A DNA stretch of 64,000 nucleotides from Octopus sinensis (lineage: Eukaryota): contig NC_043018.1 of NCBI RefSeq assembly GCF_006345805.1, positions 10,354,001 to 10,418,000 of the forward strand, written 5' to 3'. Of the stretch, positions 20,026-20,171 are shown piece by piece (position 1 is the stretch's first letter; each line of letters begins with the position of its first letter). A program made the position numbers and the translations under genes. The notes beneath the pieces are model-generated. The model worked only from the letters and a program-made list of their open reading frames with translations. It was not told the DNA's origin and ran no database searches.

Positions 20026-20171
20026 TTAAAGCTTTTTTAAGCAACAGTTTGCACCATTACTACATGGAGGACCCATAAGGGGTATCCAGCCAGCTTTATC
20101 ACAAGTAACTGACAAACATCCAACGATCATACCAACAAGGTTTTTGGTAACGTCTGGACTCAAGCATTCCT
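20026..20171 (-). CDS. Terminal coding exon 4: beta-defensin-like six-Cys domain
   Basis: Acceptor ttctatttctgatttacag|AG (phase 1). Translates (K)ECLSPDVTKNLVGMIVGCLSVTCDKAGWIPLMGPPCSNGANCCLKKL*, with AATAAA 20 nt after the stop. Confidence 0.85.

Follow-up and report, generated by a model that had tools for sequence, protein, structure and literature searches.

The beta-defensins are built on a six-cysteine array of approximately C-x4-8-C-x3-5-C-x9-13-C-x4-7-CC, with strands at the second cysteine, in the middle of loop 3 (between the third and fourth cysteines) and at the terminal cysteine pair. The tick carboxypeptidase inhibitor consists of two beta-defensin-like domains with 12 cysteines in about 75 residues, and plugs the enzyme with the C-terminal tail that follows its CC. 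Here we analyse an exon of Octopus sinensis that encodes a six-cysteine domain ending in CC. It lies at positions 20026-20171 of a stretch of 64,000 nucleotides (the window), which is 100% identical to record CM016880.1 of O. sinensis assembly GCA_006345805.1, window position 1 being record position 10,354,001. An earlier note on this DNA, made from its sequence without database searches, had described the interval as a beta-defensin-like terminal domain displayed at the end of a mucin stalk.

In the big defensins, as in the beta-defensins, a phase-1 intron precedes the exon encoding the cysteine-rich domain (PMC7203481). The big defensin reported from O. sinensis has an isoelectric point (pI) of 9.06, is cationic, and combines a hydrophobic N-terminal domain with the array C-x5-C-x3-C-x13-C-x4-CC (Gerdol et al. 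2020, PMC7203481). A defensin core carrying a heavily O-glycosylated tail is represented by DEFB126 of primate sperm (PMC4744710).

On balance we favour the reading that the interval constitutes the last exon of an unannotated gene for a secreted modular protein, and that the domain it encodes, termed here module Y, would act as a binding head rather than as an antimicrobial defensin. The existence of the gene and its paralogy with an annotated neighbour are held with good confidence, while the functional part, drawn from sequence features, is tentative. Module Y is an orphan six-cysteine domain, found only in Octopus, without a detectable sequence or profile relation to the beta-defensins or big defensins.

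Exon structure and the annotated paralogue

On the plus strand the translation of 20026-20171 is interrupted by stop codons, and the feature was therefore assigned to the minus strand. The minus-strand translation of 20026-20175 is TEECLSPDVTKNLVGMIVGCLSVTCDKAGWIPLMGPPCSNGANCCLKKL followed by a stop codon, which bears out the spacing given previously, C-x15-C-x4-C-x12-C-x5-CC followed by LKKL and a stop. The exon proper (20171-20026) encodes (K)ECLSPDVTKNLVGMIVGCLSVTCDKAGWIPLMGPPCSNGANCCLKKL and terminates with TAA. Its acceptor at 20171 is canonical (tctgatttacag/AGGAATGC; here and below a slash within a sequence or codon marks the splice site) and its stop codon occupies 20028-20026, so that the interval is exactly one terminal exon bounded by these two elements.

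Four exons on the minus strand, extending from 43983 to 20026, splice into an open frame of 579 nt that encodes a protein of 192 amino acids (aa). The AG/GT splice sites are canonical, and all of the introns are in phase 1. The predicted protein comprises a signal peptide, two six-cysteine modules of a type termed X, a linker of 43 aa rich in Pro and Thr, and the six-cysteine module Y; 18 cysteines are located downstream of the signal peptide. The X modules follow the array C-x2-C-x6-C-x6-C-x7/8-C-x7-C, and the copy in exon 2 matches the second copy, X' in exon 3, with a phmmer E-value of 2.8e-4. In all three copies of X, the third being that of the paralogue described below, the codon of the first conserved cysteine is rebuilt over a phase-1 intron (T/GT, T/GC and T/GT, respectively). 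The junction of exons 3 and 4 forms a Lys codon (A/AG) and fuses the linker in frame to ECLSPDV. Direct splicing of exon 2 to exon 4 (27426/20171) gives a stop codon, T/AG, and the linker exon is therefore obligatory for the translation of Y.

Exon 1 is the sole non-repetitive candidate upstream of exon 2 that combines a Met codon and a hydrophobic core with a strong phase-1 donor. This donor, T/GTAAGA, is identical in exon 1 of the paralogue, and the spacing between the TATA box and the ATG codon also matches. Alternative first exons were rejected, being located in microsatellites or having poor donors. The long first intron also contains an open segment with phase-1 boundaries on both sides (38261-38407, minus strand), which encodes four cysteines (VEMSCDITGAKLYWSLLFPWITLVAWRPVCMGDCWFSINNLAKTCASE) and has good splice-site scores; it is dissimilar to both X and Y.

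The paralogue is LOC115223160, which is located on the plus strand and encodes an O. sinensis protein of 103 aa annotated as 'uncharacterized protein' (XP_029649447.1), with the layout signal peptide-X-Y and no linker. Its product reads MAEHKLLVSLILTILSLDFVILVESQAA / CKECFNGKNDCSNVYPCGNHALCFTDGTLYCIEPII / DVCAVPDVETACLPSCDSGWIPLFNTTCKAGVCCVKVPS (signal peptide, X and C-terminal Y). The first exon of the gene, which encodes the signal peptide, and the beginning of exon 2 precede window position 1, and the stop codon is split (T/AA), with the T at 3072 and the AA at 4493-4494. The two genes are convergent, their 3' ends being 15.5 kb apart. The mature paralogue has 76 residues with 12 cysteines arranged in two six-cysteine modules, and a short tail after the CC.

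The paralogous Y has the array C-x8-C-x3-C-x11-C-x4-CC and is identical to the Y of the minus-strand gene at 18 of 39 residues, including all six cysteines as well as PDV, CL, CD, GWIPL, a G and a K. Nine of these 18 identical residues are encoded by different codons, and the flanking DNA is unalignable, the similarity being confined to the coding part. The two modules thus result from an old duplication with conservation at the protein level, and not from a recent copying of DNA. The long hydrophobic first loop remarked upon in the earlier note is 15 residues in length and contains a hydrophobic insertion of seven residues relative to the Y of the paralogue.

The predicted gene shares with genes of the LOC115223160 type the allocation of one module per exon, introns exclusively in phase 1, a signal-peptide exon ending in T, and the combination of X with a C-terminal Y. 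Across the family, X conforms to C-x2-C-x6-C-x5/6-C-x5/8-C-x7-C, is preceded by a signal-peptide exon and has a phase-1 intron within the codon of its first cysteine, while Y carries the motifs PDV, CL, C(D/G)xGWIPL and G..CC. Unlike LOC115223160, the minus-strand gene has a second X module, the 43-aa linker, the seven-residue insertion in loop 1, an LKKL tail, and a Y with a net charge of +2 as against -2.

The specificity of this relationship was assessed within the window. The bare four-cysteine core (C-x2-6-C-x8-16-C-x3-7-CC) appears at four places in the six-frame translation, two of them in a transposon fragment and in sequence of low complexity. The full six-cysteine pattern combined with PDV, CL, CD.GWIPL and CC was found exactly twice, in the terminal exon under study and in the annotated coding exon at 2956-3072 (plus strand). 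In a phmmer search of Y alone against 2,433 six-frame segments, the sole non-self match at E <= 10 was this paralogous exon (E = 0.0056), while tblastn of Y against it gave E = 5.7e-5 without composition correction and a value above 0.01 with the correction. Hidden Markov model (HMM) scans of the window together with 15 kb upstream of it detected exactly two copies of Y and three of X. A weak X-like match at 62206-62385 (minus strand) was rejected, as it lacks splice sites and lies in repeat-like sequence.

Orthologues of LOC115223160 are XP_014775150.1 in O. bimaculoides and CAI9739107.1 in O. vulgaris. Comparison of LOC115223160 with the O. bimaculoides gene LOC106872590 revealed one non-synonymous and no synonymous change in the signal peptide, which leaves the ratio of non-synonymous to synonymous rates (dN/dS) undefined, 11 non-synonymous and two synonymous changes in the X module (dN/dS about 1.3), and three of each in the Y module (dN/dS about 0.3). 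Module X may be under diversifying selection, although such small counts cannot establish positive selection. The combination of a variable X with a conserved signal peptide and Y is a pattern typical of secreted proteins of recognition, venom, immunity or reproduction. Within Y it is the hydrophobic and aromatic C(D/G)xGWIPL loop that is conserved, and not the basic residues.

In O. vulgaris two models are annotated for the orthologue, at 20828-24705 of the retrieved segment of OX597835.1 (record positions 42,842,261-42,876,968). CAI9739107.1 (103 aa) contains an intact Y module. In the other, CAI9739106.1 (113 aa), the middle of the Y exon is spliced to a remote exon, EELSDTHLKYWITVHEDLL, for which the O. 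sinensis window offers no equivalent; this second model probably represents a minor isoform or an artefact of the annotation.

A profile of Y searched against 1.84 billion representative proteins retrieved the cluster of LOC115223160 (3.1e-14), whose members come from O. sinensis, O. vulgaris and O. bimaculoides. The second match (1.9e-07) was dismissed, as it is a repetitive low-complexity protein of 534 aa that matches profile positions 27-44 only. A collection of 15 billion sequences does not contain the exact 192-aa protein. A word-index search with the 48-aa Y domain gave no candidate in the searched database; extended to the full 192 aa, it gave 8,000 Pro/Thr low-complexity candidates, among which there was only junk at E >= 1e-3 and none with the exons of this gene. 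The gene is thus unannotated in the protein collections searched. There are no Logan-derived records for the 192-aa protein, which is uninformative, as the annotated paralogue has none either. A literature search by locus and accession identifiers returned no match. In O. bimaculoides (CM046622.1, record positions 31,107,656-31,133,470), exon 4 was unmatched in the 10-kb flank of the paralogue, a flank that ends short of the orthologous position.

Module Y, its linker and the defensins

The segment described earlier as a mucin stalk is Thr/Pro-rich (19 Thr and 12 Pro among 43 residues) and in frame ahead of Y, but it is a short inter-domain spacer and not a mucin. None of the mucin traits looked for (a long PTS domain, VWD, CTCK, SEA or transmembrane segments) was found in the 192-aa protein, for which Pfam gave weak low-complexity matches only. 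The linker holds an in-frame tandem repeat of 12 bp, with 5.7 copies and 96% matches, which suggests that its expansion was recent. To judge from its composition, the linker is probably O-glycosylated. The observation that the domain sits behind an O-glycosylatable stalk instead of the N-terminal domain of a big defensin holds, the upstream part being formed by the six-cysteine X modules. The suggestion that the domain is tethered or proteolytically released was not borne out: Y is not followed by a transmembrane or glycosylphosphatidylinositol (GPI) signal, there is no dibasic site at PAQ-K-ECL, and the N-terminal side of the stalk consists of two more soluble cysteine modules without an anchor.

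The (ACC/CAC)n microsatellite at 20303-20525 was considered as the stalk and rejected, since it is intronic, is out of frame with the acceptor and has stop codons between it and the exon. This microsatellite, a (GTG)75 array situated 130 nt upstream of the terminal exon, reads as poly-His, poly-Thr or poly-Pro on the coding strand and could be mistaken for mucin-like coding sequence.

The assignment of Y as beta-defensin-like stood in part. Its six-cysteine spacing and predicted strand order are compatible with a beta-defensin, but Pfam, PDB sequence, Foldseek and big-defensin profile searches gave no match, and the net charge is not conserved. With loops of 15/4/12/5/0 residues, the Y of the minus-strand gene fits the beta-defensin range in loops 2-5, whereas its first loop is roughly double the longest allowed; the loops of the paralogue (8/3/11/4/0) fit this range. 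Pfam-A includes the models Defensin_beta, Defensin_beta_2 and Defensin_big. In hmmscan searches of Pfam-A at E <= 10 no family was assigned to either of the Y domains or to the paralogue, and the 192-aa protein had two weak non-defensin matches in the linker. Sequence and profile searches of PDB revealed no defensin and gave only chance matches of ankyrin proteins to 'D.GW.PL'. The Y motif LPSCDSGWIPLF (2990-3030 on the plus strand and 20080-20110 on the minus strand) resembles IPxCPxGWxxLW of the collagen IV NC1 domain (PDB 5nb0, E = 0.14); this non-significant resemblance is probably a coincidence.

An HMM was built from 23 C-terminal domains of big defensins taken from the supplement of PMC7203481. 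It scored the Y of the minus-strand gene at -1.1 bits and that of the paralogue at 3.8 bits, while controls with shuffled loops and fixed cysteines had means of 3.1 and 4.4 bits, 184 and 105 of the 200 controls, respectively, reaching at least the real score. Since the real sequences score no better than shuffled loops, the resemblance to big defensins is confined to the cysteine scaffold. The hallmark residues of the 23-sequence alignment (GWCR, HE and CGxYxCC) are all missing from Y, and the hydrophobic, cysteine-free N-terminal domain of big defensins is not present, the N-terminal part consisting of the six-cysteine X modules. A tblastn search of the window with the O. sinensis big defensin gave no match, and that defensin is a different gene.

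The net charge (K+R-D-E) is +2 for the Y of the minus-strand gene, -2 for the paralogous Y and -4 for the mature paralogue, and cationicity is therefore not a conserved property of the family. Exon 4 is preceded by a phase-1 intron (A/AG), as in big defensins; this feature discriminates weakly, all introns in both the gene and the paralogue being in phase 1.

In the AlphaFold2 (AF2) model of this Y, computed from a two-row alignment, the mean predicted local distance difference test (pLDDT) score is 74.7. Strands are predicted at residues 8-10, 14-19 (through the second cysteine) and 41-46 (through the CC), with a bridge at the I-P of GWIPL. In the model of the mature paralogue, Y has pLDDT values of 66-84 and strands at TACL, WIP and VCCVK, and X has values below 50. 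The strand order predicted for Y is compatible with that of a beta-defensin. The fold comparison proposed in the earlier note did not identify a relative: two Foldseek searches against PDB gave nothing at E <= 0.001, a method weak on domains of 40 residues, and bovine beta-defensin 12 (1BNB) ranked seventh with TM 0.25-0.28 and a root-mean-square deviation (rmsd) of 5.5 A.

Comparison with the described systems yields a mixture of likeness and difference. The predicted protein resembles the big defensins in its two-part secreted architecture, with a C-terminal six-cysteine domain that ends in CC, occupies its own exon and follows a phase-1 intron. The loop lengths are also near (5/3/13/4 in the big defensin against 8/3/11/4 in the paralogue). 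However, the protein lacks the hydrophobic cysteine-free N-terminal domain, its loop 1 has 15 residues, its profile similarity is found only at the cysteines, and the family is not cationic.

With DEFB126 it shares the combination of a six-cysteine array ending in CC and an O-glycosylatable Thr-rich segment in one polypeptide. The glycosylated part of DEFB126 is a free C-terminal tail, whereas the linker described here precedes Y and connects two folded parts. In addition, the core of DEFB126 is a recognisable beta-defensin, while Y has no Defensin_beta or Foldseek match and its loop 1 is too long. The mature paralogue and the tick carboxypeptidase inhibitor are alike in size, number of cysteines, two-module layout and the short tail after the terminal CC. 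They differ in that X has no CC pair, and the inhibitor was not returned by the sequence or fold searches.

Interpretation and alternative readings

In the reading we favour, the gene would encode a secreted product, its cysteines presumably paired in disulfides, in which the two X modules and Y are held apart by a stiff, probably O-glycosylated extended linker. Module Y would be the extracellular binding head, and the protein could bridge ligands, or present them, within a secretion or matrix. A role of Y as a binding module is suggested by the conserved surface, which is the GWIPL loop and not positive charge; Y would not be a membrane-disrupting cationic peptide. The gene is an old convergent paralogue of LOC115223160, set apart from it by duplication of the X exon, growth of the linker from the 12-bp repeat and insertion of seven residues into loop 1 of Y. 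The locus shows module evolution in progress, by duplication of X, in-frame expansion of a repeat into a glycosylatable spacer and insertion into a loop, with the phase-1 boundaries kept. The extra X, the linker and the loop insertion are new features in a family already known, if only from hypothetical proteins, and do not constitute a new kind of system.

Several points weigh against this interpretation. The gene is missing from the annotations in the collections searched and might therefore be expressed weakly or not at all. Exon 1 is located 16.4 kb upstream of exon 2 and was assigned by logic alone, and further small exons could exist. The retrieved O. vulgaris flank ends at about window position 12,770, approximately 7 kb short of exon 4, and conservation between species was read from the paralogue only. 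The AF2 models were built on alignments of two and four sequences, and with no significant Foldseek match the fold assignment is a reading of strand order. The role as a binding module was deduced only from charge and motif conservation in two paralogues.

It is unlikely that Y is a true, diverged beta-defensin or big defensin acting as an antimicrobial effector on a mucin-like stalk, for instance in skin or gut mucus. The closeness of the paralogue's array to the C-x5-C-x3-C-x13-C-x4-CC of the cephalopod big defensin, the C-terminal position of Y in its own exon behind a phase-1 intron, as described in PMC7203481, the compatible strand order, and the basic tail and net charge of +2 all speak for such an origin. 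Set against them are the lack of a Pfam defensin or Foldseek match, big-defensin HMM scores at the level of the shuffled controls, the missing hallmark residues, the acidic paralogue and the non-discriminating intron phase, while the canonical cationic big defensin of O. sinensis is located elsewhere. A related proposal, to which we likewise assign a low probability, retains the fold without the antimicrobial role: Y might be a beta-defensin fold, of independent or diverged origin, that has lost its cationicity and serves as the constant binding head of a small, fast-evolving secreted recognition family confined to the genus, with a function in mucus or matrix defence or as a chemosensory or reproductive ligand. 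In the minus-strand gene a newly grown O-glycosylated linker would then set this head apart from two variable X modules. An enzyme inhibitor in the manner of the tick carboxypeptidase inhibitor, or another salivary, venom-like or reproductive secreted ligand, is very unlikely. The 76 residues, 12 cysteines, two modules and short post-CC tail of the mature paralogue are similar to those of the inhibitor, and the conserved signal peptide and fast X (11 against two changes) fit such a ligand, but Foldseek and PDB sequence searches gave no carboxypeptidase inhibitor or toxin, X has no CC pair, the tails of the paralogues differ (LKKL and VKVPS), and the substitution counts are too small for positive selection.

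Two other explanations deny the exon a product. A duplicate that is silent, or was inactivated recently, with its exon intact in sequence but not transcribed or translated, is improbable. No protein with its exons occurs in the collections searched, where the paralogue is represented from three Octopus species, and its introns are long and rich in repeats, including a 184-bp array of 13.5 copies and a mariner fragment. Yet the four exons are open with canonical splice sites, the 18 cysteines of the mature protein line up with those of the paralogue, and the promoter and poly(A) signals are intact, as is the Kozak context; at about 47% aa identity, neutral drift is unlikely to have spared 579 nt from stop codons and to have preserved every cysteine. 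The gene is probably functional. An open reading frame (ORF) that arose by chance in non-coding DNA rich in repeats, its cysteine pattern being fortuitous, is extremely improbable. The window is rich in microsatellites that yield cysteine-rich pseudo-ORFs, and the four-cysteine core occurs four times, twice in junk sequence, but the six cysteines and accompanying motifs recur in an annotated exon conserved in three species, with matching splice sites, phases and module order, and the paralogy effectively refutes this explanation.

Together with LOC115223160, the gene defines a small cysteine-rich family without a Pfam domain, found here only in Octopus. If it is expressed, the Octopus gene sets in the searched collections miss a secreted multi-domain protein. 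Lineage-restricted secreted proteins are the usual seat of cephalopod-specific biology, such as saliva and venom, skin and sucker secretions, egg coats and chemical cues. If Y truly has the fold of a beta-defensin, it would be a further instance of this scaffold being reused without positive charge, which bears on the question of homology versus convergence of defensin-like arrays.

Feature coordinates and surrounding repeats

Table 1. Positions in the window of the elements of the minus-strand gene and of the exons of its paralogue LOC115223160
Feature	Position	Strand	Remarks
TATA box TATATAAG, ~80 nt 5' of start codon	44061..44068	-	aligns with the paralogue's TTTATAAAA box, at equal distance from ATG
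Exon 1: ATG in aaccATGg context, signal peptide MVKNRTLLLLVAVLQFLSLVKCQS, then T of split Cys codon	43911..43983	-	donor T/gtaaga; inferred
Exon 2: module X, (C)NDCYTGMFDCSKSSPNCTPYVKGYCYQNGVFLCIEPKM	27426..27542	-	phase 1-1, AG/GT; homologous to LOC115223160 X and to exon 3
Exon 3, first part: duplicated module X', (C)PSCYLPNMSCTKTAPNCNNELLVEMCFINNVLHCVER	24945..25057	-	first Cys codon split T/GC by intron 2
Exon 3, second part: Pro/Thr linker AAPPTTTPAPTTT(VPTT)x5..PAQ	24944-24816	-	plus base A at 24815, which opens the split Lys codon
Exon 4: module Y, (K)ECLSPDVTKNLVGMIVGCLSVTCDKAGWIPLMGPPCSNGANCCLKKL	20026..20171	-	stop TAA 20028-20026; paralogous to 2956-3072 (+); AF2 mean pLDDT 74.7
AATAAA polyadenylation signal, ~20 nt past stop codon	20001..20006	-	sequence read
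LOC115223160 exon 2 (module X), 3' part	1..55	+	window starts inside exon
LOC115223160 exon 3, paralogous Y, (D)VCAVPDVETACLPSCDSGWIPLFNTTCKAGVCCVKVPS	2956..3072	+	last full coding exon

The window is packed with microsatellites, tandem arrays and transposon fragments. An A-rich tandem repeat of 41 bp (11.7 copies, 97% matches) occupies 19477-19950 and starts about 50 nt downstream of the AATAAA signal. Intron 2 contains a fragment of a mariner-type transposase (26033-26395, minus strand; Pfam Transposase_1, E = 1.7e-4, below the gathering score), while transposase-like ORFs at 32493-32997 (minus strand) have no Pfam match. Intron 3 accommodates, at 21269-23750, a tandem array of 13.5 copies of a 184-bp unit with 99% identity, in which ARAGORN found no tRNA. 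The 184-bp unit resembles dispersed repeat copies, for example those near 19248-19321 and 10955-11170.

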